From the sequence record NC_070952.1: 64,000 bases of DNA. One strand, given 5' to 3'. The position numbers were made by a program, and so were the translations under genes. Positions 7,577 through 63,314 of the stretch are shown here, in pieces; within the stretch, counting starts at the first letter, position 1, and the number at the start of each line of letters is the position of its first letter. The notes below the pieces were generated by a model, which saw nothing but the letters and a program-made list of their open reading frames with translations, was not told the origin of the DNA and searched no databases.

Positions 7577-7588
7577 AACATAAAAAAC

Positions 7589-7618
7589 TAATAGAGCGAT
7601 CTTTTGATCGCTCTATTA
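7589..7618 (+). terminator. Intrinsic terminator
   Basis: taatagagcgatc-tttt-gatcgctctatta followed by a T-rich tract. Confidence 0.75.
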
Positions 7619-7638
7619 TTTATTTTATCGAGGTTTAG

Positions 7639-11454: not shown

Positions 11455-11458
11455 TAAA

Positions 11459-11481
11459 GAAGGGGAGAATTTCTCCCCTTC
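11459..11481 (+). terminator. Stem-loop, putative terminator
   Basis: gaaggggagaa-t-ttctccccttc. Confidence 0.55.
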
Positions 11482-11498
11482 ACTTTCAGGAGTAGTTC

Positions 11499-46622: not shown

Positions 46623-47141
46623 ATGACTATTAATGTTATTACGTTGTTTGAAATTGAAATCGGTGGACCACTTCAGAAACGCAGCTTAGATAAAACATAT
46701 CTTACTGCCTTGTCTATCTGGTTGGTTGAAGGGATTAATAACCCAGATGTTCCACCATTAAGTTTCCTTACTAACCCGTTTATCTGGCGTGTTAACCCAG
46801 AGAAAGGCGATCCGTACTTTAAAGTGTCTGGTTGCGATACCGGAATGAACTTCCTGGAAGCACGACAACTAATGGAAGATATCGGTAAGTTGGCGTCAGA
46901 CTATCTACTTATGGATGATACTTATCCTGATTGGTATGACCATCCCAAAAATAACATGCCGGGGGACGATGGTCGGTATAAGGTAAGGGCTCTGGAAGAC
47001 GGGTTACTGACCTACATCGATGGTCATCGTGATATGCCAATTCTCCCTATCGCATTGAAGTTGGATAAAGAATCTGCGTCCTACAAGTTTATTGTGGGAT
47101 CAAAAGAATCTGGATCTTCACCTTACTACAAATTTGGATAA
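46623..47141 (+). CDS. Hypothetical protein
   Basis: AAGGA RBS. Confidence 0.65.
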   Translation: MTINVITLFEIEIGGPLQKRSLDKTYLTALSIWLVEGINNPDVPPLSFLTNPFIWRVNPEKGDPYFKVSGCDTGMNFLEARQLMEDIGKLASDYLLMDDTYPDWYDHPKNNMPGDDGRYKVRALEDGLLTYIDGHRDMPILPIALKLDKESASYKFIVGSKESGSSPYYKFG

Positions 47142-47146
47142 CTATT

Positions 47147-47695
47147 ATGAATTTTTCTATAGCTGAAAATCATAAACACGATCTCTATATCGGTGACTTG
47201 GTCATTGAATTCACCTCGTTTGACTTATGTGCCCTGTGTATTTACTTGGCATATGTGGCAAATACCGAAAGTGAGAAATGTCATCAGTTCTTACTTAATA
47301 AGGATACTGATAAAAATACTTTCAGTATCTATTACGGTCACGATGATATATTTATCATAAACAGTGACGATAATCCATCACAAGAAGTCACTCGAGATGA
47401 GTTACGTATACTGGGTGGGATTATTGCTGAGTACACTCAGTATGATCAATACACTGAACGTATGTTGGGGACTGGCGAGTGGGAGATTCCAGAAGCGGAG
47501 CTTTATTACCACCTTACTTCAACAGACGTTGTTGCGATCGTGTATCAAAACCATCCTGAAATATCTAATGTTTATGTTGGCCTGTATCTCAGTGATACGG
47601 GGTGCTGTTGGGGTGTAATTGGTCCACATCAAAGCAACGACGAGTTCGATCGTAACTTCGTATTCACTAAAGAAATTTTAGCGGGACAAATCTAA
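47147..47695 (+). CDS. Hypothetical protein
   Basis: 182-aa ORF, last gene of the plus-strand block. Confidence 0.65.
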   Translation: MNFSIAENHKHDLYIGDLVIEFTSFDLCALCIYLAYVANTESEKCHQFLLNKDTDKNTFSIYYGHDDIFIINSDDNPSQEVTRDELRILGGIIAEYTQYDQYTERMLGTGEWEIPEAELYYHLTSTDVVAIVYQNHPEISNVYVGLYLSDTGCCWGVIGPHQSNDEFDRNFVFTKEILAGQI

Positions 47696-47705
47696 ACAAA
47701 CATAA

Positions 47706-47736
47706 TAGAGAACCTACCCAATGGGTAGGTTCTCTA
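47706..47736. terminator. Bidirectional terminator at the strand switch
   Basis: tagagaacctaccca-a-tgggtaggttctcta with a T-tract. Confidence 0.75.
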
Positions 47737-47866
47737 GTTTAGTCTTATTTTTTTTTGTTTAATAAAGGGATTACCCTGAGTGATATCCAGAACCTTTATT
47801 CAAACTCTGGTGTTGTCAAATGCTTACTCCACATAAACATCTTACTCAACAGCAGAACTTATCAAT

Positions 47867-48751
47867 TTATAAATTGATAAGCGTGCCGATAGTTACATTG
47901 ACTTTGGTGGTATAGCTCCACACTAATCCATTAACAACATAGTCAAACGTGTAATTCACCGTTCTCACTATGGATAACAGATCCACCTTAATGACTACGA
48001 AGCTTCCATCATCATTAAATTTCAAGTAACTGTCTGCGGCTTTAATATTTTTAACGAGCTTGGTCACATCTTTGGTTCCATCCATAATCTTGAATGGAAA
48101 CGCCTGCACACTACCCTTACCTTTAAGATTAATCACACCGGTAGTTGTGATGACTAGAGTGGGTTTCAGTGCGTAAGTCAATACAGATTTGGCACCACTT
48201 GAATAATACTGGGCAACTAATGATTGTTCTTTAGTGGGTAGTAGATTGACATCAGCGCTACTATTGATCTTTACCCTCACCCCATCTTTATTCCGAGAGA
48301 CAATAGTAATATTGTCACCCACCGTTGATAGTTTAAGGAAAGCGTCGGTAGCAATTACTGATTGAGTTCCATTCAGCCATTTTATCGTTATATCAACTTC
48401 TTCGCCTGGGATCCATTTAAACGTCGATGGATTAATACTAAATACAGCAAGTGATGCAGGAAGAACAGAAACATCCAATTCTTTCGTAACGGTCTTTATG
48501 TCTTCACCCTCCAACTCAGTGTCTGGATAAGTGAATGTAATTTTGCCTTTACCAGAAGAAACGGCTTGTGCAATCACAGGGATGTACGCACTGACTTTAT
48601 CCATACCGGTCAGGTCTTTACCCAATAAGATCATGCCCTTCATGTCAGTCTTAGTCCAGTCAACCATTATTCTATCTATAACAGGCTTACCCTCAAATGT
48701 AGGTGTAATTTTAATTGAACCTGTTTGTCCTTCAAGGATTTTAATATTCAT
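47867..48751 (-). CDS. Three-domain Ig-like repeat protein (putative fibre cap)
   Basis: Same three domain types as the 3445-aa protein; begins one strand into an A-type domain and has no C-terminal extension. Confidence 0.7.
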   Translation of the reverse strand: MNIKILEGQTGSIKITPTFEGKPVIDRIMVDWTKTDMKGMILLGKDLTGMDKVSAYIPVIAQAVSSGKGKITFTYPDTELEGEDIKTVTKELDVSVLPASLAVFSINPSTFKWIPGEEVDITIKWLNGTQSVIATDAFLKLSTVGDNITIVSRNKDGVRVKINSSADVNLLPTKEQSLVAQYYSSGAKSVLTYALKPTLVITTTGVINLKGKGSVQAFPFKIMDGTKDVTKLVKNIKAADSYLKFNDDGSFVVIKVDLLSIVRTVNYTFDYVVNGLVWSYTTKVNVTIGTLINL

Positions 48752-48771
48752 TACTGCTCCCGTTAATAAGA

Positions 48772-48804
48772 AGAGGAGAGGACCCCTTGCGGAATCCTCT
48801 CTCT
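48772..48804 (-). terminator. Intra-operon terminator with GCAA loop (minus strand)
   Basis: On minus: agagagaggattcc-gcaa-ggggtcctctcctct followed by tctt. Confidence 0.55.
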
Positions 48805-48811
48805 AATTAGA

Positions 48812-49486
48812 TTACTGTTCCATCTGAACATCAAAACGATTAGTAGGGATACTACCGTCGTTGATGTTGGTATTAAGAACAACGTCAGCTTCCAGAGAGT
48901 AAGCTTCGCCGTTATCAGTACCAGCAATGGTAACTTTAGCGGTTGCGGTAACAACTTCAGATTCGCTTGACTGGATAGATTTGAAGGTATCGACACCGTC
49001 AACGATGCTGAACTCAAACTTATCAGCAATGCTAGCTGCATCAACAGTCACACTGGTTACAGAACTGGAGATGTCTTCATCACCCTTCATAACTTTGAAG
49101 GTCAGTGGCTGAGTAGCCCACAGGTCCATTGTCAGAGGGGTAGAGACATCAGCCAGTGAAGCAGCAACTTCAGCAGCGGTAATGGTCAGGTTGATAGTCC
49201 TGGTTGAGGTGCCCCAGTTAGGTGTATCTTCATGACCGGCGCCAGCTTTAGTATACTGGAAAACGATCGTTGCTTCTTGAACACCAACAGCGATTGCGGT
49301 CAGGGGAACAGTCAGCAAACCAGTAGCACTGTCGGCGACCAGGTCACCCAAGGTAACCAGACCTTTGAAATCTGAGGCATCGGTGTCAATTACGACATCA
49401 CCGACAACGTTAACGTTCTCAAAGAGAGGTTTAACAACAACGTTGCCAACTTGGCCGTTGACAATACTCAGTTCTTTATCTGCCAT
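48812..49486 (-). CDS. Two-domain Ig-like repeat protein with C-terminal NRF strand
   Basis: A+B domains; ends IPTNRFDVQMEQ; strong TAAGGA RBS. Confidence 0.75.
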   Translation of the reverse strand: MADKELSIVNGQVGNVVVKPLFENVNVVGDVVIDTDASDFKGLVTLGDLVADSATGLLTVPLTAIAVGVQEATIVFQYTKAGAGHEDTPNWGTSTRTINLTITAAEVAASLADVSTPLTMDLWATQPLTFKVMKGDEDISSSVTSVTVDAASIADKFEFSIVDGVDTFKSIQSSESEVVTATAKVTIAGTDNGEAYSLEADVVLNTNINDGSIPTNRFDVQMEQ

Positions 49487-49502
49487 TTTTACTAATCCTT
49501 AA

Positions 49503-50693
49503 TTATACAAATTCGATATTGAAACGATTAGCAGGAATACCAGTTGTATTGGCCTTCACTACCACGTCAATAGTCATTGGAATGACGTGCTCGGTACCTT
49601 GATAGGTAACGTACACATCTACCATAGCATCGATAATAAGATCTTCATCGGTGCGTGCGGTAACAGCTTGGTACCCCCAGTGGGTATCGTCGACTTTAAC
49701 AAGCTCGATAGCGTCGTTAGGATCAGTTCGATCAACAACGTTTGTAACACTTGATGTAATATCCGTATCACTCAGCATTACTTTATAATTAATCGGTTTG
49801 GTTTCCCACAGATTCAAGGTCATATCTGTAGTACCATCTTCGATAGTTGGCTCAACAACCTCTGCAGTTATTGTGAACTTAACTGGGAGTGTAACGACAT
49901 CGCCGTCACCTTGCCCGCCAAACACATTAACCATCAGGTTGAGAGTATCATCGCCAGCTTTGGTTGCTGTCCAAGGGATATTGAGGAATCCATCGGCATA
50001 GCTAGCGTCGCCCAACGTGATGTAATCCAGCATAACAGTGCCAGGATACACACCTGCTGCCGACGTCACATCGTTATTACGTTGGATAACCTTAACTTTC
50101 AAGGTTCCCGTATCGCCATTTGCTGCTGATACTGTATCTGGATCAACAGTACCTTTGATGATTACTCCGTCCCAGGCTGCTATAACAAAAGGTACCGTTA
50201 CAGTTTCTGATCTAGTATCATCACCAATTTGCAGATCGTAGGTATACACAACATTTTCAGTGTGTTCGGTGCTTTCAGCATCTTGAACATACCAGCCTGT
50301 TGGTGTACCTGTTACATAAGCATTGTCAGCAATAACCACATTACTGATGCTCGACGTTTTATCTGTGCCGTTTACATCGACTGTAAACGGAACCCCTTCA
50401 CCTTCTTCCCAGATAGTTACATTCTGAGTGATTGGTGTTGTTGTAATAACAGTAGGTTTATGAATGAACGTCATAGGAACGACAAGTTTATGTGTTCCTT
50501 TATAGAGAAATGTCAGGTTAAGATTATACGTTGTTTCCTGTTCAACATCACCCAAAAAAGAGTACGTAATCGTACTCTCTTCGATTTTGGAAATCTGGAC
50601 GACCGGATGATCGTCCAGGGTAATGACTAAATCAGAATCCAAGTTACTTAACGTCTGACCATTAACACGTAACGACTGGTTAGTGTCGGTCAT
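49503..50693 (-). CDS. Four-domain Ig-like repeat protein with C-terminal NRF strand
   Basis: Partial C, B, A, B domains; ends IPANRFNIEFV; AAGGA RBS. Confidence 0.75.
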   Translation of the reverse strand: MTDTNQSLRVNGQTLSNLDSDLVITLDDHPVVQISKIEESTITYSFLGDVEQETTYNLNLTFLYKGTHKLVVPMTFIHKPTVITTTPITQNVTIWEEGEGVPFTVDVNGTDKTSSISNVVIADNAYVTGTPTGWYVQDAESTEHTENVVYTYDLQIGDDTRSETVTVPFVIAAWDGVIIKGTVDPDTVSAANGDTGTLKVKVIQRNNDVTSAAGVYPGTVMLDYITLGDASYADGFLNIPWTATKAGDDTLNLMVNVFGGQGDGDVVTLPVKFTITAEVVEPTIEDGTTDMTLNLWETKPINYKVMLSDTDITSSVTNVVDRTDPNDAIELVKVDDTHWGYQAVTARTDEDLIIDAMVDVYVTYQGTEHVIPMTIDVVVKANTTGIPANRFNIEFV

Positions 50694-50707
50694 GAAATAA
50701 CTTTCCT

Positions 50708-53700
50708 TTATTCGTCAGTTGGAAGAATGACACTCTGAGTCAGAGTTACAGGTGTGTTTTGATAACCGGTACCAGAGGTTTCGAAGTCTTCAGATTCTTC
50801 CATCGAAGCGTAATTCACTTCAGCAGGAACAATAATATCCAAATAATCCTTACCACTAACATTTCCGGTCGCACCATTCACCGTAATATGGATAGTCAGG
50901 TTATCTTTACCAACTTTGGTGCCGGTGACAGGAATAACAACTGTACCATTATCTCCAGTGGTTGGAGCCCCAAACGTCACCAGACCTTTTGCATCACTAC
51001 TACCAGGAACGAACGTCACATTGCCCGCTAATGTGTCATCACCAACTTTACCCGTCAAGATAACCTGCCCTGTTTCACCGTAGGTGATCGGGGTCATGCT
51101 TCCTGTTGCAGAGACAGGTTGGGTTTCTTCATTAGGTTGGATACTGAAGACCACATCTTGATTTACGGTCCATGTAGAATAACCATTATTCACGGTTACT
51201 TGATAACTCACGGTATCAGACAGTGTCTTATAATTATCACTGGCAATGATAGTCCACGCATTGTTCAGACCAGGTCCCACTTTCACACGGTTGTTAGCCG
51301 CTGTGCCAGCAATCGAAATAATCCAATTTGACGGGACAGGGTTCCCACTCACATTAATAATGAATGGAAGCGTCGAACTAGTGTCGTTAAGTTTTCCACT
51401 GACCACCTGAACATTACTTACGGTTGGTTGTCCGGTATAACCTTTAACCAGGTAATTAACATTCTGATCGACTACCAGGTTATTACCTTTATACGTAATC
51501 GCATAGCTGATAGTCACCGTGGTGTTTGTATCGCCAGTACGCGCATTGTAGCAATACCACTTACCGTTTTGCAGCTTGATGTAATCGTTGCTTGAAACAG
51601 CGGTGATGGTTGCTTGAGAGGTAATATCCGTACCCGCATCATCGGTGAGTTTAAACGGCAGTCCACCACTTTGGTTCAAGTTGGCTTCAACTGTTTGTAA
51701 TCCACTGACGGTTGGGAAGGTCAGGTTCGAGATTTGCGTGACATCCACAAAGAAACTGGATTGGTTTACAACGCCACCTAACGGGTTAACAGTAAACTTG
51801 ACTCGGGTGGTTTTCTGAGGAGTAGAAGTTAACTCTTTCAGGAACCATACCGGCTCAAATCCAACGTTTGAAGCATATCCGACACCCAAGATATTTGGAT
51901 CCGTAATGGCAGCACCCGTTGTTGTATTCCCGCCAACGTTATTCTGGATAAGATCCAGACCACGTCTAATCCGATAGTTCAAGCGAATGGTGGTACCTGC
52001 AGAGGTGCCATCGCCGTAACTACCTGAGAGAGTCGCGTCATTGGAAATCACATAGAAACGATCAGGCAGATAAACGTAAGACGGTACAGTGACTTTAACG
52101 TAATCCTTACCTTCAACAGCCGTTGCATCGTTCTCCTTAGAAAGAAGGCCGAAATACAATGTACCGTTTTGGCTGACGTCCATATCGGTCAACCCAGTTG
52201 GGAAGAAGGCTGCGTAGTAATAAACGCCGCTTGTTAATGTCACAGTGACTGTCTTAGGTGTTCCACTTGTGCAACCAGGGAAGTTAGACTTGCTTGTCCA
52301 AACACCGAAAGTCTTATTCAGTGTGTTAACATCAAGCGCCACACCTCGGTAAGATCCATTTACAGTCAGCGCTGTCGTGTTGTTGGCCGTTGTTCCAGTA
52401 CTGACCTGACCGGTGATGCCGTTGTTAAAGGTAGCGAGGTTACTCAAAGCAATAACAAGGTCGATACCGTTATACGCAGCAATGGTAAACTGAACCGCCT
52501 GAACAACAGTGTGATCACGAACACCATCTGTATAGACAACAGTAAATTCAATTTGAGCAACTGTACTCGCATTGATGTTATTGTAGATTTCCCACCAACG
52601 TGTCGTAGTACCTGGAGTGGTTTCAGGACGACGCACATACGGGTTATCTTTAATAGTCACAGATTTGATCGAACTGGTTGGAATTGCTTTACCGTTCTGG
52701 GTTATCGTAAATGCAGGTCCGCCCACATCCCACACTTTTCCGCTTACCGCAGTTGGTGTAGTAACAATCGTGTCGCCAGCCTTCGTCCCTTTAATCACCA
52801 CTTTCTGATTATAGGTGCGTGTGCTGTTGACAGCGACGCTGTTTAGTGTTGCGGTACATTTCATAGCAACCGTAGCATCTACAGTGATGTCATCACCACG
52901 GTTATCGTAATCAACTTGGAAGTTGATACCGGTCGCCGTCGCAAAGTTCGTTGTAGGTTTGCTCAGTACCCCACTTAATGCTGCTGCATTACTTAACGTC
53001 CATGCCATACCGCCAGCGTTGGCTGCAATCACGTTTTGTGCAACGTCTTTACCGACACTGAATTTAACCGGTGCGGAAAGCACTGAACCAAACTGCCCCG
53101 TTGCCGTTGCAGGTTCTGTATCACCAGGATACAAGAACAAGGCATTCTGATAAATGACCGCGTTAGGAACATCGATCTCAAGGTAGTTTTTACCAAGAGT
53201 TCCGGCTGGCCATTGATCGTAACCGGCACCAATAAAGTTAACCGGAAGCTTAACCCCCACTTGTTGGATGGTAGACCCGAAGGAATAATAGACCCAGTTT
53301 GAAGGAGTAACAAAGTCAATGGTACCGAACATCATTCCGGTATTGTTATTGACGGATCTTAACAATGCCGTACTACTTGAACGCTGGTTGTAAGGAACGT
53401 TTTGACCTCGGAATGTCATGCCGAAGAAGAATGACTTACTTGGTGATGGAGCGACCGCGACAGGTGTGGCAGAGAAATTTGTCAGACTCCAGGTCAACTC
53501 ATTACCGTCATACGCTGCAAGCGTCACAGGCAGAATGACTTTAATGATCCTTCCGTTATAAGCAGCCGGTAATGCGATACCGACAGTCAAGTTGAATGAC
53601 TGTGCCGGAATAGCCGTATCACTGTAAAGCTGAATGGTTGGGTTGGTGTCAGTAGAGATAACTCGGAACAAGTCATTACTGAGTGAAGCAACCCTGGACG

Positions 53701-56700
53701 CGGTTACCAGTTCAGTATCGCCATCCTTAATGCTCACCATCGCACCAAGACGCTGACGTCCCCACATTGTCCAGCTGTTGGAGCCGAGGTCCGTAACCGT
53801 AAGGTCATAGAAACTGGTACTGACAGATACACGATCAACACCAATTGTTGGTGAAGCACTGGCATCAGCTTTATCCCATACAAAGATCATTGACCCTTGA
53901 TAAACCTGAGTCATCTCTATTTTGAGATAAGTGATTCCAGTCGTGTCGTCATAACGCTGACTAACTACTTTAAAGTAGTCCGCAAACTTCTGCGTGCCAT
54001 TACCAGACAGTTCAGGTTTGAATACTCCTTTACTGTACTTGTAGTTACGCCATAACAGTGTGAACGGAAGTTCAGCTTGGTCACCCACATCCTGCATCAG
54101 GTTTTTAGCAATGCTGGTAGAACCTTGGAACTCAGGTGTTGGGTTTGCACCGTCACCCGGCCTAATATAAATAAAGTTTCCATCAACAGAAACAGTGCTG
54201 CCACGATAAGGAACATTCAATTTCCATTTCGTTGTACGACTCTGTTGACTACTACTGTAATTTTTATTAGTGATCCACCACCACGTCCCTGCTACTGGGT
54301 TGTCCAGAGAGAGTTGCATGTAGTTCGATGTAACCGGATCCCCAGACCCTACCATGTCATCGACACAACTTGTTGGTACCGCTTGCGCAGTAACGTCAAC
54401 ACCACCGGTAACCACTTTAAATGGATTTGGTCCATAGGTCCACAAGTAGCCCAAGGTGTTAGTCGGGGCTGACTGAGTCACTACTGGCCAATCGGCTGGA
54501 CGTTTCAAGGTTACTGGGTAGTCGAACGTCCCTTTAGTTACATAACCCGTAGTTGGGTCAGTATACGTAAAGGTCATTGGAACAGTTGTCGGACCATCTG
54601 CGGTAGTAAATGGTGCGGTAATTTGAACAGTAATTGTGGATCCCGCCAGAGAAGTAATCTTCATTACTTTCTCATCAACCACTTTAATAACTAAAGCAGT
54701 ATTGGTATTCACAATCTGAGTATTGGTACTCAGTAAGCGAACCACCAATGCCCCTGTTACTGTATCACCGTCTCCACCTGTTACACCAGCTGCTGAAACA
54801 CCGACCAAGGAGTTTTCTTTGATATTGAGAGGAAGATCTGTAAAGCCGTAATCCACGTTCTCAACACCAGGAGTAACCCCGTCTTTCCATTTCCAGCAAA
54901 TCCGGGCGGTATCGTTTCCTTTAGCGAGTGCATTCAGCGTAAAGTTCTGCTGCATGTTACCGCCACTTACCGAGAATCCGGTAATAGAAACCAGTCCTTT
55001 CAAATCGGTTCGAGAAGGATCATACAACGATGTTGTTCCCAATACCGCTGCTGAGTTCTTATAGGTTCCCTTGAGGATCAATCCAACAGAAGCTTTACCA
55101 GTAAGATCGAGATACGTGTCCCAGCTTGCTGGGGTGATCTGAGGGTACCAGGTTTTCTGGTTCCAGGCTGCTATAGTGAAATTAATGTCCACCAAGGCAG
55201 ACCACGGCCACGAACGGTATTGTCCAATTACCCGACCAGGGACAGCATGAGTTGTCTGCGTTGTTTCCCCATAGATAATCTCATATGTTTTAGCAGGACC
55301 ACCCAGCGTGACGTACTTGTCATCTGTCTCTCCGTAGTTAGAGATAGAGGTAACACCGGAAGAGATATTCACCCCACCACACATTACCGTCGGTGACAAA
55401 CCGCCCTTTGAGAACACCTGCAACTCAGCTGTTGGCCAACCAGAGAAGTCTGGAGCTGGGCTGGTATACACCAGAGGAATCTCAACACGTCGGCTGTAGT
55501 TAGACCCGCCGTACTTGTACACCAAGTTAATGAAGTCAGAAACATTGACCGATTGGTTAGGCGCAACAATACCCGCTAAGGTGTAGTTGAAAGATGATGC
55601 ATTCCAACTGCTTAATTGCAGTACGTTCGCATTGGTAGACGAAGCTGCTCCTACTTCACGCGTGGCAGTTAAATTACCTGCAGCAATTTCAGCGGCATTG
55701 TCAATTGGAATTCCACCGAACAGGATTTGCAGATTGTAAACACCCGTATCGGTATTTCCGCCTGTCAGCAAGTTGTCACGGTTACCGATCTCAAGACCCA
55801 ACTCACCCATCACCTGGACATTAACATCAACAGACGCAACATCACGTGGATCAGGTGTGGTACCCGCATCAGGTGACCAGAAGACCAGAGTCATCTTATC
55901 CACACCTGCTTTGGCACCAGTGAAAGTAATAACGTAATTGTTGTTAACTACTTTATAGTCTTTCAGTGTGAGTTCAGCAGGAATCGTTGACAGATCCGGT
56001 TTAAAGGTAGCGTTAGCACCTGCTGGCTTGTCCTTATAAATAGGGGAACAAGTCAGGACAGTGTCATTGCCCAATGAACCTTCAATGCTGGTCGGACTCG
56101 CAGTCACTTTAAAGCGAACACTTGAAGAACCGGTTATGCGGAACGATGCATCGAAATTGACCGTTTGAAGTGCGTCAGTTCCGTCTACTTTGTAATACGC
56201 AGTCATTGGAATAGACTGAGTAGTCGTTGTAGGTTCTGCACCAATAATCTCGTAACCACGTGGAGGCGTCACTTCGATGTATTTGTTTTTCGCTCCATCA
56301 CGAAGATCAAAATGATCAATGGTACTTAACGTCACGCCGTTGAACTGAATAGCCTGTCGGAAGCTACCCAATGACCAGATAGTGACAGCAACATTATCAT
56401 TGTTGATAACAGCGACCGGTCCCATGCTTACTGCAGCACTTGTATTAAAGGTTGCAGTCTTAGGTTGCGGTGCACCCACTTCATAAGTGATGTTGATGGT
56501 CTCAGGATAAACCTTGGTTGACCCTGCGATATCAGAACGCGTTCCTTTAACGATAATCCCGTCTTTACTGGTACCCGTGATTGTAATGCCATGGACATCG
56601 GCATTCGCTAACGCGTACTTCACTCCAGGGGAGTTTGGCGGTAAATCGTAGTCACCGTACTTCAGTTGAACTTTGATCGTTGCCGTCTTACCCCAATCCA

Positions 56701-59700
56701 CAGAAACAGCGTCGTCGTAACTCACCAAAGTAAATGGTTCATTGCTAGACTGACTGGTGACTGTAAATTCGATGTAAACGAAATCAGTACCTTCTTTTTG
56801 CATACTGACATCGGACGGTGTGCCACCGCGAACGTAACAGAGTTTCATGTTACTGACGGCTTGACCGGCTAACGTGTAAGGAAGTTGGTAACTTGCAAGT
56901 GATCCATCTGCGTTGTACACCGGAACCAAATCCCCAATGGAGATGTTGGAAGGAACAGTGGAACGTGTGGCATCAATTGTCATGTCTGGTGACGGATAAC
57001 CGACATAGAGCGCTAACAAGTTGATGTTTGCAGGAATACCCGCCTGACCGTCAATCTTGGTTTGATTGGTGGTTACACGGAAATAGGTTCCATCCCAGCG
57101 ATTGATGGTGAACTTCTCAAGCACATCAATTTCATAATCAGCACCGCCCATGCTATAACCCAACAGCAGCGGTAACTGACCTACAGCTGTTCCGGCTGTT
57201 GAACCATTGGTGACATACCACTCTTGCTTGGCAGTCATGGTAACATTGGTACCACCGGCTGGCGCTACTTTATAACTGGTGATTGTTACAGTACGACCAC
57301 GTTCATCTATCAGGGTGATTGGAATCGCACCGCGATCAAAGACACTCGCTGTGATGGTCGGGTTGTTTCCAACCGAAACACTTGGAACACGAATCGTTGC
57401 CGGAACTGTCAAGGTTTTGGTATAAACTTTACCGGACACTTGATCGGTGTATTTAATCCCAATAGAGACCGTATAGTTGTAACTGGTTCCTACTGTCCCG
57501 CCTTTAGCCAACAAGAACTTCAGGCTACCTGCCAACGTGTCTTCAAGGGTAATGGCGTCTGCGACATCAACCGTTGTGGTAATTTCCATGTTGGCATCGG
57601 TCAGATCAACCGGCGTACCTGCCACATTCAAGGTCAGTGGATAATCCACTGTGTCCTCGTAGAAGCCACGGATATTGTCACCTTGGGTAATGATGTTTAG
57701 ATCATCCGGCCATGCAACCTTCGTGTCGATACTGATGCTGGTTGTGTTGGTCACATCACCACTCACACCAAACACCAACTTCATTGTACCATTACCACCC
57801 TTCGTTAAAGTATAGGGGATAACATACAACGCACGTCCACTGTCATACGCAGGCGTACCAAGAACCACAGTTGCTGGAATGGTCGACTTACTGACATCCA
57901 ACGCAACTTTGTCTGTTCCCACGTTTCCTTTATAAAGGAAGGTCGCGGTGATCTCACCACTGGTACCCGAAGCAGCATCAATTTTGTCTGGGGTATGGGA
58001 GTCAGCGATAAAGGTCACACCGTCCCAAGCAGCCAAGTTAAACTTGAAGTCGGCTGGGAGCATTTGTCCTGTGCTCAAGCCCACTGAGTAATACAAGTTC
58101 AGACCGACAATCTTTGAGGTTGCGGTAGTCTCTGCGAAAATTACTTCCCAGTTCAGTTTATTCACAGAAACATATTTGTTTCCAGAAACAACCAGTGTCT
58201 GGGACAATGCTGAAGTCCAATCCTTATCACCGGCCATCAATTTAAGCGGGAAGGTATTTTTATCCCAGATCTTGGCATCGATGGTCTGCGAAGCAGTGTA
58301 AAGAACTTCCATTGGTGGGAAGGTGGTACGCACAGTAAACGGTAAAGACAAGTTATACTGTTTACCATCAGCTGGATCAGTGTACTGAAGTCTCAGCGGA
58401 GAGTTCTCTGCAAGCGAACGCCCTACATAAGTCCATACGTCATTTATGAATGTCAATGACTCTGAACCAATATTGGTGATCTTCGCCGTACCGGTACCCG
58501 TTTTGGTGATTACCAGATTCGGGTCATTCAGTGAAAGCTTGGTACCAGAGAACTCGATATTGAGCGGCAGGTCTTTTGGTTTATCAACATCCAAATCAAT
58601 CAACGTTGGGGCATCAATAGCCTTCAGGATTTTGATCTGTACAATGTTGACATTAAGCCACAGACGTGCAATGTCGGTTTTAGCCGGGGTTGCATCCGCT
58701 TTAAGTTTACTGAAGATACACCCTTCTGACACCCCACCCTTATTTTTGGTATATGTGATCTGATACTGATTCTTAGCAGCGTCATAAGACATATTCTTAA
58801 AGGTGATGAATTCAGGCTGAACAATAAAGTCAGACATGAGTTCGCTGTCTGCAGTCACATCGTCCGCACCTTTAAAGACTTTAAAGGTCAGCTGGTAATC
58901 TTTATCTGAATTACCGGCAATGGTGAACGAAGTCGGAACAGCAACGAGGTTGGTATTGTACGGACCATCGCCCTCTCCCGGACTGTCAGGGTTGTTTTCC
59001 CCACCCGGTGCACTTGGGTCGGTTGGACCATCTGGACCGCCAGGACCGGTTCCTGTTTCGCCTGGTGCTGGACCGCCACCTGGGTTCGCCGGGTCATCAT
59101 CGTTTACAGGGAGATCTGGGTTAGTCTGACCCGGAACATATTTGGCAATGACAAAATCTTGCGCAAATTTGTAGGTCTTGACTACGCCATCAACCTGAGC
59201 GGTAAACGTAAAGTTCGCCGTGTAGTTAATGTCCTGGGTTTCACTGGCTTGTTTAACAAACCACTGATTAGGAACCTCTGGACGGTTAACGATATACTGC
59301 TGATCAACATTAGCAATTGGATCAACGGTCACAGAGCGGATTAGTCCATTGCTATTCTCACCGTTAACTTCCAGGTACCATGTTGGTCCACCGGTCTGAT
59401 AACGATTGACCGTACGTGGCTGAGGTGGCATTGGAACAATACGCACAATCGAATCAAGTTTAACTTCAACCTGAACAACGAAAGATTTAGTTTGCAGTAC
59501 ACCACGCGGATCTAACCACTGGTAAACCTGGGTAAAGGTATCGCGGGCTGATGTTCCTGGAATCTGGGAATCGTTAATCAATTCCCAACTTACAGTGGTG
59601 CTATCAACAGAAGTGATATCAACCAACTGTTTACTGCCTTGCGGTCCCGTTGCAATGCTCAGGTCCGTTAACGGAATAACCTGGTCCCCGTACGTAACCA

Positions 59701-61045
59701 CAGGCTTATAGCTGCCGGTCGCATCAATATAGCCTTGAAGCAATGTCGGTACACCTGTCACATTAAAGGCAGGTAGCGTTTCTGGCTTAACGATGATGAT
59801 GTTAACGAAGCCGGTTGCTTTGACAATCGTTCCGTTATCGTTGTAGTTGAATACCCCACTTGCAAGATCTGAAATCTTATCAACGGTATTACCGAAGTTA
59901 GCATTTACAGTTCCTTGATACACCATCGAGAAATCCCGATTGGTTTTGACGTATTGCAAGTTACTGCGACCAGTACTGGATTTCAATGCAGTAGGCGGAA
60001 TCAGAATCTCAACCACAGCACCTTTATAGCTTGCTGTTAATGTCACCTGAATGGTATCGCCATTTGTAGCGGTAACATCAGACGGTACAGAAACCACGGT
60101 CAAGTCATTCGGTAAATCTTTCTCGATCTTTAAATCGATATAGAAATTCTTATGGACTAAACGACCGTTCCAGTCATAGGTGACACGCACAACAATCTGG
60201 TCATTAATTTCAGCAGTTGCTGAACCATAGATTGTTTCACCGTCAATATCCAGCAAATCAGTTGAACGCTCAAGAATGGCATATCCAGACTGAGTGCTTA
60301 ACTCGACGGTTGCGACGGTAGTGATGTCCTGTGACCCTGCGAACAAATACGTGTTCGGGATCGTAAAGGTTTCACCACGGCGACTGGTAATAGAAGCAGG
60401 AAGGTTGGACGTAATCTCAGGAAGCTGGGCTTCTGAAAGAACCAGTTCATAAATGAACAGTGGATACACACCCCGACCAAATGACGGGTCAGTGATGGTA
60501 ACCGTACCGCACTCCAGAGTTTCCCAGTTAATGGAGTTTAAGCTCTCACGCTCAGTAACATACTTTTCAAAGAACAAGTTACCGAAAGCCTGCATTGGAC
60601 CTTCATGAGTTTCTGCCTGTTCCTGAGTAACTAAGACCCCATAGGTGTCTTCATCTTTCAGGTATAACAGTGTCGGCTCAACAGGTGCTTGAAGGGCTTT
60701 GACATAAGCTTTTAATTGATCAACATCATTGATCTCCACCAAGGGAATGGCGAAGTCAGTTAAGATGTCATCCATCTGAACATATTTGATATCAATGTCC
60801 ACACGAGCAAAGCCCGTTTTACGCGACACGATACAAACACGCACTACTCCGTCTGGAAACGTAACAGCGCTCTCAATAACAAGATCACCTGCAACCAGCC
60901 CGTCATAACGTTGTTTTGATAAAGCCAGCTCATCCTCAGGTCCCGTAATTTCCAAACTGGCAATACGGTCTTTAAGGAACTTAATCACTGGGGTATAAAG
61001 AGGGTCATTAATAACCTTCTTATTAACCTTGACTAATTCTGCCAT
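50708..61045 (-). CDS. Giant 3445-aa Ig-like repeat virion fibre/adhesin-like protein
   Basis: About 100-aa T/V/G-rich beta-sandwich repeats, recurrent F.I.AW(D/N)G junctions and a Gly/Pro hinge; AGGAG RBS. Confidence 0.75.
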   Translation of the reverse strand: MAELVKVNKKVINDPLYTPVIKFLKDRIASLEITGPEDELALSKQRYDGLVAGDLVIESAVTFPDGVVRVCIVSRKTGFARVDIDIKYVQMDDILTDFAIPLVEINDVDQLKAYVKALQAPVEPTLLYLKDEDTYGVLVTQEQAETHEGPMQAFGNLFFEKYVTERESLNSINWETLECGTVTITDPSFGRGVYPLFIYELVLSEAQLPEITSNLPASITSRRGETFTIPNTYLFAGSQDITTVATVELSTQSGYAILERSTDLLDIDGETIYGSATAEINDQIVVRVTYDWNGRLVHKNFYIDLKIEKDLPNDLTVVSVPSDVTATNGDTIQVTLTASYKGAVVEILIPPTALKSSTGRSNLQYVKTNRDFSMVYQGTVNANFGNTVDKISDLASGVFNYNDNGTIVKATGFVNIIIVKPETLPAFNVTGVPTLLQGYIDATGSYKPVVTYGDQVIPLTDLSIATGPQGSKQLVDITSVDSTTVSWELINDSQIPGTSARDTFTQVYQWLDPRGVLQTKSFVVQVEVKLDSIVRIVPMPPQPRTVNRYQTGGPTWYLEVNGENSNGLIRSVTVDPIANVDQQYIVNRPEVPNQWFVKQASETQDINYTANFTFTAQVDGVVKTYKFAQDFVIAKYVPGQTNPDLPVNDDDPANPGGGPAPGETGTGPGGPDGPTDPSAPGGENNPDSPGEGDGPYNTNLVAVPTSFTIAGNSDKDYQLTFKVFKGADDVTADSELMSDFIVQPEFITFKNMSYDAAKNQYQITYTKNKGGVSEGCIFSKLKADATPAKTDIARLWLNVNIVQIKILKAIDAPTLIDLDVDKPKDLPLNIEFSGTKLSLNDPNLVITKTGTGTAKITNIGSESLTFINDVWTYVGRSLAENSPLRLQYTDPADGKQYNLSLPFTVRTTFPPMEVLYTASQTIDAKIWDKNTFPLKLMAGDKDWTSALSQTLVVSGNKYVSVNKLNWEVIFAETTATSKIVGLNLYYSVGLSTGQMLPADFKFNLAAWDGVTFIADSHTPDKIDAASGTSGEITATFLYKGNVGTDKVALDVSKSTIPATVVLGTPAYDSGRALYVIPYTLTKGGNGTMKLVFGVSGDVTNTTSISIDTKVAWPDDLNIITQGDNIRGFYEDTVDYPLTLNVAGTPVDLTDANMEITTTVDVADAITLEDTLAGSLKFLLAKGGTVGTSYNYTVSIGIKYTDQVSGKVYTKTLTVPATIRVPSVSVGNNPTITASVFDRGAIPITLIDERGRTVTITSYKVAPAGGTNVTMTAKQEWYVTNGSTAGTAVGQLPLLLGYSMGGADYEIDVLEKFTINRWDGTYFRVTTNQTKIDGQAGIPANINLLALYVGYPSPDMTIDATRSTVPSNISIGDLVPVYNADGSLASYQLPYTLAGQAVSNMKLCYVRGGTPSDVSMQKEGTDFVYIEFTVTSQSSNEPFTLVSYDDAVSVDWGKTATIKVQLKYGDYDLPPNSPGVKYALANADVHGITITGTSKDGIIVKGTRSDIAGSTKVYPETINITYEVGAPQPKTATFNTSAAVSMGPVAVINNDNVAVTIWSLGSFRQAIQFNGVTLSTIDHFDLRDGAKNKYIEVTPPRGYEIIGAEPTTTTQSIPMTAYYKVDGTDALQTVNFDASFRITGSSSVRFKVTASPTSIEGSLGNDTVLTCSPIYKDKPAGANATFKPDLSTIPAELTLKDYKVVNNNYVITFTGAKAGVDKMTLVFWSPDAGTTPDPRDVASVDVNVQVMGELGLEIGNRDNLLTGGNTDTGVYNLQILFGGIPIDNAAEIAAGNLTATREVGAASSTNANVLQLSSWNASSFNYTLAGIVAPNQSVNVSDFINLVYKYGGSNYSRRVEIPLVYTSPAPDFSGWPTAELQVFSKGGLSPTVMCGGVNISSGVTSISNYGETDDKYVTLGGPAKTYEIIYGETTQTTHAVPGRVIGQYRSWPWSALVDINFTIAAWNQKTWYPQITPASWDTYLDLTGKASVGLILKGTYKNSAAVLGTTSLYDPSRTDLKGLVSITGFSVSGGNMQQNFTLNALAKGNDTARICWKWKDGVTPGVENVDYGFTDLPLNIKENSLVGVSAAGVTGGDGDTVTGALVVRLLSTNTQIVNTNTALVIKVVDEKVMKITSLAGSTITVQITAPFTTADGPTTVPMTFTYTDPTTGYVTKGTFDYPVTLKRPADWPVVTQSAPTNTLGYLWTYGPNPFKVVTGGVDVTAQAVPTSCVDDMVGSGDPVTSNYMQLSLDNPVAGTWWWITNKNYSSSQQSRTTKWKLNVPYRGSTVSVDGNFIYIRPGDGANPTPEFQGSTSIAKNLMQDVGDQAELPFTLLWRNYKYSKGVFKPELSGNGTQKFADYFKVVSQRYDDTTGITYLKIEMTQVYQGSMIFVWDKADASASPTIGVDRVSVSTSFYDLTVTDLGSNSWTMWGRQRLGAMVSIKDGDTELVTASRVASLSNDLFRVISTDTNPTIQLYSDTAIPAQSFNLTVGIALPAAYNGRIIKVILPVTLAAYDGNELTWSLTNFSATPVAVAPSPSKSFFFGMTFRGQNVPYNQRSSSTALLRSVNNNTGMMFGTIDFVTPSNWVYYSFGSTIQQVGVKLPVNFIGAGYDQWPAGTLGKNYLEIDVPNAVIYQNALFLYPGDTEPATATGQFGSVLSAPVKFSVGKDVAQNVIAANAGGMAWTLSNAAALSGVLSKPTTNFATATGINFQVDYDNRGDDITVDATVAMKCTATLNSVAVNSTRTYNQKVVIKGTKAGDTIVTTPTAVSGKVWDVGGPAFTITQNGKAIPTSSIKSVTIKDNPYVRRPETTPGTTTRWWEIYNNINASTVAQIEFTVVYTDGVRDHTVVQAVQFTIAAYNGIDLVIALSNLATFNNGITGQVSTGTTANNTTALTVNGSYRGVALDVNTLNKTFGVWTSKSNFPGCTSGTPKTVTVTLTSGVYYYAAFFPTGLTDMDVSQNGTLYFGLLSKENDATAVEGKDYVKVTVPSYVYLPDRFYVISNDATLSGSYGDGTSAGTTIRLNYRIRRGLDLIQNNVGGNTTTGAAITDPNILGVGYASNVGFEPVWFLKELTSTPQKTTRVKFTVNPLGGVVNQSSFFVDVTQISNLTFPTVSGLQTVEANLNQSGGLPFKLTDDAGTDITSQATITAVSSNDYIKLQNGKWYCYNARTGDTNTTVTISYAITYKGNNLVVDQNVNYLVKGYTGQPTVSNVQVVSGKLNDTSSTLPFIINVSGNPVPSNWIISIAGTAANNRVKVGPGLNNAWTIIASDNYKTLSDTVSYQVTVNNGYSTWTVNQDVVFSIQPNEETQPVSATGSMTPITYGETGQVILTGKVGDDTLAGNVTFVPGSSDAKGLVTFGAPTTGDNGTVVIPVTGTKVGKDNLTIHITVNGATGNVSGKDYLDIIVPAEVNYASMEESEDFETSGTGYQNTPVTLTQSVILPTDE
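58960..59135 (-). repeat. Gly/Pro/Asp low-complexity linker inside the giant protein
   Basis: PGQTNPDLPVNDDDPANPGGGPAPGETGTGPGGPDGPTDPSAPGGENNPDSPGEGDGP. Confidence 0.8.
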
Positions 61046-61129
61046 TTGACAGATCTCCTGATATATATAAATATTCTAAGGTAATAAAAATAGCTAAAGC
61101 AAAGAATCCGAACACGCCTACATTATAAC

Positions 61130-61159
61130 TAGAACTTCTGGGACATCCCAGAAGTTCTA
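61130..61159 (-). terminator. Near-perfect palindrome, putative terminator
   Basis: tagaacttctggga-ca-tcccagaagttcta. Confidence 0.65.
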
Positions 61160-61163
61160 TGTG

Positions 61164-63314
61164 TTATTTGGTAAAGGAGAAACTGATCGGGTAAACTGTC
61201 TGGTCAGCAAAACTGAACTTCATTGTCGTTGCTGCTTCAAACACCGGTGAGTTAATATCATAGATATCAAACTGCACCATCAGAAGGCCTTTCTTCGGAT
61301 CGTATTCGGAATACGTCTTCCCAAGTTTAACGCCTTTTTGTTTATCCCAGGATTCGTTATTTAACTGCACTTCACTTGGCGGAGAACTGATCCAACCTTG
61401 AAGGGAGAAATAAACATTTACTTTACTATCACCAATGAACTCGTGTTCAACATACCGAGCAGTACCGGGTTCACGATAACGGGCATCGATCGGTGGAAGG
61501 TGAATAAAGTTACCCAACCCAGATGCGGTTGCAATAGGGGCGATGAAAAGACTGTCGCCATTTTTTAAATCCACAGGGATTGAAATTGCTAACGCACCGA
61601 ATGACTGGTTATACATCTTCTTGTAGGTTGTTGCTTTTACACCGTTAAGCGTAAGCTCGGTAATTTCAGCATTCATTGGGTACTTGTTATCGGTCCCACG
61701 TAATGACCAGATAGACTCAATGTACACTTGTCCACTGACCGGGTCTTTACGGTAACTCCAAACTGGCAAATCCGAAGTGACCTCATAAACAACGTCAATT
61801 TTAACACTGCCCGAATAACTAGATGAAATAGGTTTATCAGTGTTAAAGGTGAAGTTCAGTTTAACCAGGGCACGTTCATCCTCAACTTCAATGGCGGTGT
61901 TAGGGACGCTGAAAGATAACACCCCTTGATCCGCATCGTAGTTTTGACTCTTGATCGTCGCACCGTTGTTAAACTTATCCAAGGTAACTGCATCGAAGAT
62001 ATCGCCGTTGTTTTGACGAACAAACAAATTGAAGTGAACTTCATCGTCGACTACTGTTCCAAGACCCGCAGTGACTCGAACCGGCAGTACATCACTTCCT
62101 ACCAGGATAGAATCTTCAAAGGGAACAGATTTCTCAATTCCAAAAGGAGACAGATCAACACTACCCGTTAAGGTCAACGTGTTTTGCTGATGAGGGTTCG
62201 GAACCACTTTACGCGACAGAATGATCTTGTTACCAACAACACCTGATTCACACCCGCTGGTTACATCCGTTAAATGAAAACCAACCACCGGTGTACCGTC
62301 TTTCCAGAAAACGTGAGCATAGAGTGTTTCTTGTTTTCTTTTATAGGTGTGGCTGTCGATAACGATATTGATATCTGTCTGACCGTTACTCCAACGTTTA
62401 ATTGGCGCACTACCTGTCAGGAAGATAGGAGCATTTTGATTGCTGACTTCATTCAGGTGTAATTTGATCTTCGCTGTACCTTGGTCTTTGACATCAGAAA
62501 TAGGAACATCAAAATGGATAACACCATCAATGATCGAAAAATCTTGAATCTGGTTCGCAATCCCATAAGTCCCGTTATCAAATTGGAATTTTACCGGCAG
62601 GTTTACCGTGACCGTGGTATTAGGGTCAGCCAGGACAACAGAAACCCCTAACAGGTTTTTACCAACCTGAGTGACCTCTACTACAGCGTCATTGGTTTTA
62701 ACTTTCGTTCTGGCAACCCAGTTATATTGCACGCCGTCTACTTCAGCTGCACCCATGACTGCATACGTTTCTTCTCCTCCATTATTAATCGGAGTATAGA
62801 ACGCATAAGGGATACGTTTCTCTTTGGACGGAATCGCTACAGCGACGCCATCGATTTCACGAGTGGCTTTAAGTGCTAATGGATAACGCAGAAGTTTACC
62901 TTCGGTGGTTCCAACTTCAAAACGCATTACACCACCATCAAACGTGATTGGAGTAACCGTTAATGGTGATGGTCCTGGCAGAGTAACATAGAACCGAACT
63001 GGAATGGTTTCGCCGTCCACTACGCCTGAAGTTTGCAGAACCAATTCAACAGGTCCAGTGATGGGGGTCAGTTTGATGTCAAACCAATACATCCCGGTCA
63101 GTGGATCGTAGTATTCATTGAAAGATGTTGCGTTCCCGCCAGGTAGATTATTACCGGACATAAAGGAACGGGAAATAGTAAGACCATCAATGGGTGATTT
63201 GTCATCAGCCCAAACAAGTAAACACGCAACGGTAAGAATATCGCCGGTCAATGCCCCATCGGTTCTGAAATAAATGTCACGGCCATTCACAGCGACTTTC
63301 GCTTCATTGTTCAT
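61164..63314 (-). CDS. Beta-rich 716-aa hypothetical protein, possibly Ig-like virion protein
   Basis: V/T/G-rich alternating strands; GAGG RBS. Confidence 0.65.
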   Translation of the reverse strand: MNNEAKVAVNGRDIYFRTDGALTGDILTVACLLVWADDKSPIDGLTISRSFMSGNNLPGGNATSFNEYYDPLTGMYWFDIKLTPITGPVELVLQTSGVVDGETIPVRFYVTLPGPSPLTVTPITFDGGVMRFEVGTTEGKLLRYPLALKATREIDGVAVAIPSKEKRIPYAFYTPINNGGEETYAVMGAAEVDGVQYNWVARTKVKTNDAVVEVTQVGKNLLGVSVVLADPNTTVTVNLPVKFQFDNGTYGIANQIQDFSIIDGVIHFDVPISDVKDQGTAKIKLHLNEVSNQNAPIFLTGSAPIKRWSNGQTDINIVIDSHTYKRKQETLYAHVFWKDGTPVVGFHLTDVTSGCESGVVGNKIILSRKVVPNPHQQNTLTLTGSVDLSPFGIEKSVPFEDSILVGSDVLPVRVTAGLGTVVDDEVHFNLFVRQNNGDIFDAVTLDKFNNGATIKSQNYDADQGVLSFSVPNTAIEVEDERALVKLNFTFNTDKPISSSYSGSVKIDVVYEVTSDLPVWSYRKDPVSGQVYIESIWSLRGTDNKYPMNAEITELTLNGVKATTYKKMYNQSFGALAISIPVDLKNGDSLFIAPIATASGLGNFIHLPPIDARYREPGTARYVEHEFIGDSKVNVYFSLQGWISSPPSEVQLNNESWDKQKGVKLGKTYSEYDPKKGLLMVQFDIYDINSPVFEAATTMKFSFADQTVYPISFSFTK

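Follow-up and report, generated by a model that had tools for sequence, protein, structure and literature searches.

In this study, we analysed a 64,000-nucleotide stretch of sequence record NC_070952.1 (hereafter referred to as the window), in which four consecutive genes, gp194, gp195, gp196 and gp197, encode proteins composed of immunoglobulin-like (Ig-like) domains. Each junction between these genes brings together a short C-terminal peptide (tail) of the upstream product and a particular kind of N-terminal domain (acceptor) of the downstream product, and both partners are conserved among related phages. These tails and N-terminal domains very probably represent cognate inter-subunit connectors, and together they make up a conserved, modular and probably undescribed connector system, the junctions of which are of at least two orthogonal types. 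The explanation that we favour, with a probability of roughly 0.6, is that the four products are subunits of a fibre of Ig domains that are joined by complementation of the acceptor with a strand provided by the tail. The DNA derives from Erwinia phage AH04 (MZ501267.1, 262,639 bp; positions 47000–62000 of the window are 100% identical), a jumbo phage of the genus Meadowvirus with Erwinia billingiae as host and a relative of Pseudomonas phage OBP. All four genes are encoded on the minus strand and annotated as ‘hypothetical protein’.

Iterated profiles detected two types of Ig-like domain in these proteins. Either type, A or B, occurs at five places in gp197. gp195 and gp194 contain a single domain of each type, and gp196 has one A-type and two B-type domains. 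The giant protein gp197 starts with a non-Ig region, which is conserved in relatives (it is common to Kosakonia phage Kc263 and the protein P0056), followed by a hinge and approximately 30 Ig-like domains, which include the A-type and B-type copies. The hinge consists of 60 residues rich in Gly, Pro, Asp and Asn, which separate the N-terminal region from the Ig array and are probably flexible; similar low-complexity stretches precede the first A domain in the relatives. gp196 is composed of an acceptor-2 domain, a B domain, a covalently linked short strand, an A domain, a second B domain and a type 1 tail. Both gp195 and gp194 begin with an acceptor-1 A domain; in gp195 it is followed by a B domain and a type 1 tail, in gp194 by a middle domain and a B-like domain, but no tail. 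Pairwise alignments match residues 6–221 of gp195 with residues 188–394 of gp196 (30% identity, E value 5e-22), residues 3–118 of gp194 with 6–137 of gp195, and residues 3–331 of gp196 with 825–1167 of gp197.

A preliminary description of this locus had proposed that within gp197 each B domain runs into an A domain through a short first strand, that gp196 and gp195 append one extra strand of this kind to their last B domain, and that gp195 and gp194 start one strand late and hence lack it. The peptides quoted in support are found exactly in the translations of gp194, gp195 and gp196, and the two junction strings in the 3445-aa product gp197. Covalent B-to-A junctions are indeed present inside gp197, but as a general rule the claim does not hold: only about six such junctions are visible, and the domain order is more complex. 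For comparison, a junction profile of 52 positions was built from 41 covalent junctions, in which a domain end runs into an A domain, from AH04 and its relatives. The N-termini of 12 gp195-like and gp194-like proteins align to this profile only from position 25–37 onwards; that is, positions 15–24, which correspond to the short first strand, are absent, as the preliminary description had it for gp195 and gp194. Likewise, 13–19 residues (mode 15) lie between the B-end motif and the turn of the A domain in covalent junctions, while the split proteins possess only 6–10 residues ahead of this turn. At the opposite end, the B profile stops at ...NINDG in gp195 and at ...KANTTG in gp196, leaving 13–14 further residues in these proteins (see Table 1), whereas gp194 ends flush, i.e. 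4–5 residues beyond the same profile end, as had been noted before. Thus, the C-terminal extensions of gp196 and gp195 exist as described, and their beta-strand nature, like that of the short segment ahead of covalently linked A domains, is what their position would suggest. The type 1 tail occupies the place of the covalent first strand in the paralogous junctions, and its R-F-x-V core recurs in several covalent junction segments. We also considered that the acceptors might be closest to those covalent A domains that are preceded by an R-F-x-V first strand, an idea that was dropped, as pairwise phmmer comparisons place the last A domain of the giant proteins closest, and this domain has a different upstream segment.

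The gp195 gene is the only subunit gene found in every related locus. Tblastn searches identified it in Shewanella phage SXP01, Pseudomonas phage OBP, Edwardsiella phage pEt-SU and Kosakonia phage Kc263, with weaker matches in one Pantoea phage and two Serratia phages, all of which are jumbo phages with genomes of 253–285 kb; approximately 20 further homologues derive from metagenomes. In an alignment of 22 gp195 homologues, which are 53–78% identical overall, the tail stands out as the longest invariant run (T206, N207, N209, D210, G211, I213–F218 and V220). When the profile of these 22 homologues was searched against 1.84 billion representative proteins, 38 matches were obtained. Every match covering the B domain and the tail reaches the last or second-last residue of the respective protein (e.g. 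3424–3634 of 3635 or 3998–4122 of 4123), and the acceptor matches begin at residues 1–5, with the single exception of a covalent copy inside a 5283-aa protein. A natural fused protein, in which an internal tail 1 is followed by an acceptor, is not among the 38 matches of this exhaustive search. In the same vein, the pattern [IV][PH]x[NT]RF[NDS][IV] is present in 47 retrieved proteins ranging from 95 to 4123 aa, where it is always located 3–4 residues from the C-terminus and never internally. The invariance of the tail and its strictly C-terminal place go beyond what chance would produce. Tail and body can also be combined differently: one protein consists of a gp194-like body, a B domain and tail 1 (P0024), and another one of acceptor 2, a B domain and tail 1 (P0042).

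To read the order of these modules, nine loci were inspected gene by gene, namely those of AH04, OBP, SXP01, pEt-SU, Kc263 and four metagenomic contigs, which together provide 27 gene junctions. In each of them, consecutive genes on the same strand carry the cognate terminal elements (tail 2 then acceptor 2, tail 1 then acceptor 1), and one of these genes is gp195-like. The chains comprise proteins of 3445, 396, 224 and 294 aa in AH04; 4079, 1859, 939, 230 and 507 aa in OBP (gp203–gp207); 3381, 1533, 1519, 1162, 507 and 222 aa in SXP01; 5119, 3124 and 223 aa in pEt-SU; and 3577, 1249 and 229 aa in Kc263. Although the genes differ greatly in number and size, the 27 junctions follow a common grammar: an anchor protein with the conserved non-Ig N-terminus ends in tail 2 and is followed by proteins with acceptor 2, which end in either tail 2 or tail 1; next comes a protein with acceptor 1 and tail 1 and, optionally, one with acceptor 1 and no tail. 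Type 2 tails end the upstream giant or large proteins in all relatives, and the next gene always possesses an acceptor-2 N-terminus, i.e. 60–80 residues that are conserved in every protein following a type 2 tail. The type 1 tail closes the protein preceding the gp195-like gene in all nine loci as well as the gp195-like protein itself, and the next gene, if any, opens with acceptor 1. The preliminary description dealt with the type 1 junctions only, and the joint between gp197 and gp196 therefore adds a second, equally conserved connector. It also lends substance to the earlier proposal that gp196 acts as adaptor, since this protein begins with a second kind of acceptor, which is matched by the second conserved tail on gp197. 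A third junction type was observed in SXP01 and in one metagenomic contig (L003:1-1949, L010:1-4800), where the first giant protein carries another conserved tail (...GKSYATPFKVEVAQ, ...GKTYGTPFKVISPRE) and the N-terminus of the next protein is different as well (MELKQSSAVPF..., MEFKKSLTVPF...).

Two observations concern individual adaptors. The Kc263 adaptor (L005:14203-17952) is annotated as ‘attaching and effacing protein’ in GenBank, a label that looks as if it was carried over from Ig-like similarity and does not in itself testify to such a function; spurious transfers also seem to underlie many other product names in Kc263. In a metagenomic relative of gp196 (P0069, 384 aa), similarity is lost over the last ~80 residues and there is no tail, most likely due to a frameshift in the short 3-kb contig.

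Further support for a specialised role of the acceptors comes from residues that distinguish them from covalently linked A domains. Glu is found at position 23 in 19 of the 23 acceptors as compared to one of 41 covalent A domains, where Lys dominates, and Tyr78 shows the same distribution (19 of 23 versus one of 41); kinship between the sequences is ignored in both counts. This pattern would fit a specialised docking edge, and perhaps Glu23 pairs with the invariant Arg217 of the tail. In the general I-set topology of Ig domains, the partner of the first strand is the terminal part of the second one, close to the N-terminal pole, from which the docking segment in gp195 can be predicted to comprise K19-P20-L21-F22-E23 (K-P-x-F-E). 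As for acceptor 2, the acceptor-1 profile also matches the last two thirds of this domain in gp196 with an E value of 2.6e-8; hence, this domain is of the A-like Ig kind, albeit diverged, and does not represent an unrelated fold. The comparison with the B domain suggests that acceptor 2 may represent an Ig-like domain that starts approximately two strands late.

Structure predictions by AlphaFold2 were obtained for monomeric gp195 (from an alignment of 22 sequences) and gp196 (13 sequences). The gp195 model has a mean predicted local distance difference test score (pLDDT) of 90.6 and displays two beta-sandwich domains with strands from residues 4–9 and 13–18 through to 194–206. The tail, residues 207–224, is modelled as coil with pLDDT values dropping to 66 and then to 47, and it does not fold back on its own chain. 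For gp196, the mean pLDDT is 69.8; confidence is high for residues 1–171 and 283–379, which comprise acceptor 2 and the two B domains, and the tail is again coil. Hence, a tandem Ig-like beta-sandwich fold is predicted for both domains of gp195 and, with confidence, for three of the four domains of gp196. In agreement, a Foldseek search of the PDB with the gp195 model retrieved tandem Ig-like domains (E values of 1e-7 to 1e-5, 7–18% identity), the best of which are I-set-like: titin Z1Z2 chains rank at the top, followed by Ig1-2 of receptor phosphatases and by cadherins. No pilin was among the PDB matches listed. Among viral models, the search returned uncharacterised members of the family itself and then generic Ig-bearing virion proteins. 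Pfam and PHROG searches revealed no membership in the curated Ig-like sequence families (Big_2, I-set, FN3 and others).

We propose that one long and thin Ig-domain fibre, most likely a virion appendage of the jumbo phage, is built from gp197, gp196, gp195 and gp194 as successive subunits. The subunits would be synthesized separately in the cytoplasm and joined head to tail without covalent bonds. In the proposed joint, each donating subunit ends in a short conserved peptide, which by itself adopts no structure, and the next one opens with an Ig-like domain devoid of its first strand or strands. The peptide would fill the position of the missing edge strand and thereby recreate the continuous domain–domain junction that exists elsewhere in the same proteins, contacting the K-P-x-F-E segment with which the second strand of the acceptor ends and possibly engaging Arg217 with Glu23. 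The order of subunits would be set by two orthogonal pairs of plug and socket, i.e. tail 2 of gp197 with acceptor 2 of gp196 and tail 1 of gp196 with acceptor 1 of gp195. As gp195 carries both acceptor 1 and tail 1, it could also add to itself, and gp194, an acceptor without tail, would terminate the chain where present. The individual parts of this model are not equally firm. The Ig-like folds, the truncated N-termini, the conserved terminal tails, the grammar among relatives and the unstructured tail of the monomer models are observations; insertion of the strand, its contact with the acceptor, polymerisation of gp195 and placement on the virion are inferred. A location on the virion appears quite probable, and strand complementation of the Ig fold is the likelier interpretation of the joint. 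The most far-reaching version, according to which this family of jumbo phages builds a cytoplasmic fibre of variable length by chaperone-free donor-strand complementation, using at least two (possibly three) orthogonal pairs to set the order and a universal, self-polymerising gp195-like subunit of two domains, is attractive at somewhat less than even odds.

Several results weigh against the proposed mechanism. The structure predictions are those of monomers, in which the A domain of gp195 reaches high confidence even though the additional strand is missing, so it may be stable and complete enough by itself. In gp196, the A domain and its covalent strand (residues 175–279) have pLDDT values below 50, only one homologue sharing this A domain. 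When compared with the profile of the 41 covalent junctions, the donor tails score at the level of noise, owing to an insertion ahead of the R-F core and to their short length. Similarly, hhalign relates acceptor 2 to the B domain with an E value of only 0.04 and low probability, albeit in a register consistent with approximately two lost strands. With both of its ends active, free gp195 should polymerise in an uncontrolled manner, and no regulator is evident. Finally, the Kc263 and ZPAH34 papers contain no documentation of these proteins in virions (there is no proteome for these genes), and electron microscopy of Kc263 mentions just a tail ‘with visible fibers’.

Whether gp195 forms a polymer depends on how its own tail is used. 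Of the nine loci, only those of AH04, OBP and one metagenomic contig (L007) carry a gp194-like gene after the gp195-like gene. Such a gene is absent at this place in SXP01, pEt-SU, Kc263 and two contigs, and the ninth locus ends with its contig; beyond the nine loci, gp194 homologues are present in two Serratia phages and one Pantoea phage. The preliminary description had regarded gp194 as the terminating cap. The acceptor without a tail accords with this role, but the cap is not a general terminator because it is absent in at least five of the nine loci. The cap proteins are diverse (294–598 aa), and diversity is frequently seen at the distal tips of fibres. In the whole Kc263 genome, translated in six frames, an N-terminal copy of acceptor 1 is present only in the gp195-like gene (E value 5e-28), tail 1 only on the adaptor and the gp195-like protein, and tail 2 only on the giant protein. 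That is, there are two donors of tail 1 and one kind of acceptor, and still the tail is invariant, for which the addition of gp195-like subunits to each other is the simplest reading, although the distal tail may also stay free or serve another purpose. The head-to-tail polymerisation suggested at the outset has thereby gained indirect support, from the invariant tail in relatives without a cap and from the sole acceptor 1 of Kc263; we rate it as plausible, with chances just short of even. In AH04, a one-to-one chain of gp196, gp195 and gp194 is possible. The hairpin between gp195 and gp194 (Table 1) could lower expression of the cap relative to gp195, which would fit a less abundant cap.

The strongest competitor retains the joints as proposed and differs in the architecture of the chain, which would be of defined length, with gp195 as a single-copy last or second-last link, and with the tail either free or serving as working tip in phages without a cap. 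In its favour, the donors (gp196 and gp195) and acceptors (gp195 and gp194) of AH04 match one to one, there is exactly one gp195-like gene per locus, and neither a chaperone nor a length regulator is evident. However, the tail remains invariant in phages that have no cap or other acceptor for it, which is hard to explain without a partner, and we found no precedent for a free conserved peptide acting as receptor-binding tip. We therefore consider a chain of defined length unlikely, albeit a serious contender.

It is also conceivable that the tails are recognition peptides for a different partner, for example an assembly factor (such as gp198), a place on the capsid or tail where they dock, or a component of the host, and that the N-terminal domains are complete folds. 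This would account for the confident model of the gp195 A domain and for the disorder of the tails in the monomers, which they share with many linear binding motifs, and gp198 would be at hand as a conserved neighbour. Yet it leaves unexplained why tail type and the type of the following N-terminus are paired at all 27 junctions, why the acceptors are truncated exactly at the position of the covalent strand, and why acceptor-specific residues are conserved at the predicted docking edge, which makes it improbable. Still less probable is a scenario in which strand complementation is followed by spontaneous formation of an isopeptide bond, linking the tail, through its invariant Asn, to a Lys in the acceptor. 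Isopeptide bonds of this kind occur in pilin domains of Gram-positive bacteria and in their engineered split versions. Asn216 is invariant in the tail, a Lys is present within the first 3–7 residues of every acceptor, and Glu23 is acceptor-specific. On the other hand, an N-terminal Lys is common in covalent junctions too and hence unspecific, Lys19 is replaced by Thr in the gp194-like acceptors, and no structural model brings Asn and Lys together. Hardly credible, finally, is the view that the genes are remnants of a broken giant gene with independent or idle products and vestigial terminal peptides: the split points inside domains and the short spacers of 14–60 nt are what a random break could yield, but isolates representing six host genera, as well as metagenomes, show the same boundaries with separate starts; no segments are more conserved than the tails, and no chain gene examined contains an internal stop.

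The proposed fibre resembles chaperone-usher pili (Pap, Fim, Caf1), to which the preliminary description had likened it, in that an incomplete Ig-like fold would be completed by a strand of the neighbouring subunit, specificity between strand and groove would determine the order, and an adaptor, a polymerising subunit and a non-donating terminator (the logic of PapH) would be employed. In contrast to these pili, in which the C-terminal strand is missing and the donor is N-terminal, the AH04 proteins lack the N-terminal strand and the donor is C-terminal; moreover, they are multi-domain proteins of up to 3445 aa that would assemble in the cytoplasm. No signal peptides were detected in gp194–gp197, whose N-termini run directly into the first domain with no hydrophobic segment. 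The AH04 locus encodes no PapD-like chaperone or usher (no Pfam family was assigned to gp194–gp198, and the neighbours are phage genes), and searches of Pfam, PDB sequences and Foldseek disclosed no sequence or family relation to chaperone-usher pilins. Consequently, on account of the absent signal peptides, the absent chaperone and usher and the reversed polarity, this is not a chaperone-usher system: the notion of cognate connectors between subunits is backed by the 27 junctions in nine loci, whereas membership in that pilus class is not. For strand donation itself, the evidence is indirect, being positional and comparative. The polarity is rather that of the type V pili of Bacteroidia (FimA/Mfa), where the place of a subunit's absent N-terminal strand is taken by a C-terminal strand of the subunit before it. 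There, a protease removes the N-terminal strand from a lipoprotein precursor at the cell surface. The AH04 subunits differ in being made without the strand, starting at the second strand, in lacking a lipoprotein signal and in belonging to another fold family.

Edge strands that are added or exchanged, with an aromatic residue as anchor, also connect Ig-like domains in the complex of titin Z1Z2 with telethonin and in the strand swapping of classical cadherins, but these are pairwise clamps or dimers rather than linear polymers, and the match to them extends to the general tandem Ig fold only. Tailed phages carry Ig-like accessory domains on structural proteins (T4 Hoc, tail tube, capsid and tip proteins); the known cases, in contrast to the chain described here, are single chains with covalent links between domains. 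The long tail fibres of T4 (gp34–gp37) are likewise made of ordered gene products joined end to end, with the variable distal part last. They are trimeric beta-structured rods that need dedicated chaperones, whereas the AH04 proteins are strings of Ig domains with short peptide connectors. Donor-strand complementation is known from bacterial and archaeal surface filaments. In the searchable literature, we found no description of donor-strand joints in phage fibres or of multi-gene chains with cognate terminal peptides, an absence that is no proof.

If correct, the proposed mechanism would define the first donor-strand-linked viral appendage, assembled in the cytoplasm with no chaperone or usher and with a polarity opposite to that of chaperone-usher pili. 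It would explain how fibre length and composition can vary, as the relatives divide the same array into two to six genes, swapping adaptors and tips. In addition, the giant ‘hypothetical’ genes of a block that accounts for ~5–10% of these genomes would obtain a function, and the short peptides with their cognate domains would represent natural, mutually orthogonal protein connectors.

Table 1. Features of the Ig chain and its surroundings, in window coordinates.
Feature	Position	Strand	Description	Basis
gp197	50708–61045	minus	3445 aa, proposed first (anchor) subunit	open reading frame and A/B profile matches
gp196	49503–50693	minus	396 aa, proposed adaptor subunit	sequence, profiles, AlphaFold2
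gp195	48812–49486	minus	224 aa, candidate self-polymerising unit	sequence, AlphaFold2, Foldseek
gp194	47867–48751	minus	294 aa, proposed distal cap/tip	profiles
gp198	61164–63314	minus	716 aa, conserved neighbour upstream of gp197	open reading frame
Tail type 2 of gp197	50711–50788	minus	last 26 residues, DFETSGTGYQNTPVTLTQSVILPTDE; proposed as donor to the gp196 N-terminal domain	
Tail type 1 of gp196	49506–49547	minus	TTGIPANRFNIEFV; proposed to donate a strand to the gp195 A domain	
Tail type 1 of gp195	48815–48853	minus	SIPTNRFDVQMEQ	conservation and coil in model
Acceptor-2 domain	50460–50693	minus	gp196 residues 1–78	
Acceptor-1 domain of gp195	49172–49486	minus	gp195 residues 1–105, Ig-like A domain without the short first strand	
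Acceptor-1 domain of gp194	48452–48751	minus	gp194 residues ~1–100	
Covalent counterpart of the putative donor strand, VIIKGTV	50145–50165	minus	gp196 residues 177–183, between the WDG B end and the A domain	
Low-complexity hinge of gp197 (putative)	58955–59134	minus	residues ~638–697	read from sequence
Terminator-like hairpin	48776–48801	minus	11-bp stem, between gp195 stop and gp194 start	
Bidirectional terminator-like hairpin	47706–47736		perfect 14-bp stem with T-rich flanking sequence on either strand; separates the convergent genes gp193 and gp194	

Each gene of the chain has its own start codon preceded by a purine-rich stretch/ribosome-binding site. The spacers between gp197 and gp196 (14 nt) and between gp196 and gp195 (16 nt) are out of frame, and the spacer between gp195 and gp194 (60 nt) is in frame and contains a second stop codon. 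Fusion of the chain genes by read-through or frameshifting was therefore rejected as unlikely, given the own starts, the frame-changing spacers and the second stop. The hairpin downstream of gp194 likely acts as a bidirectional terminator that closes the gene chain. Upstream of the chain lie the conserved gene gp198 and a ribonucleotide reductase gene, and the other neighbours are small hypothetical phage genes. gp198, which in AH04 is located between gp197 and the ribonucleotide reductase gene, has a 722-aa homologue at the corresponding position in Kc263. Assembly factor and attachment protein are conceivable roles for gp198, whose membership in the system is uncertain. Searches with gp194–gp198 retrieved no Pfam or PHROG family above noise (E values up to 0.1, chance-level matches apart), and PDB sequence searches found no solved relative for gp194–gp198, for the N-terminal 700 residues of gp197 or for the gp195 alignment.

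Elsewhere in the window, three consecutive plus-strand open reading frames of 1228, 1271 and 1698 aa (3890–16595), all annotated as hypothetical, adjoin a gene annotated as baseplate assembly protein. Their products are probably large virion or tail proteins and, by the profiles used here, appear unrelated to the Ig chain. The same trio of large open reading frames is present in Kc263 (L011:9669-22209).

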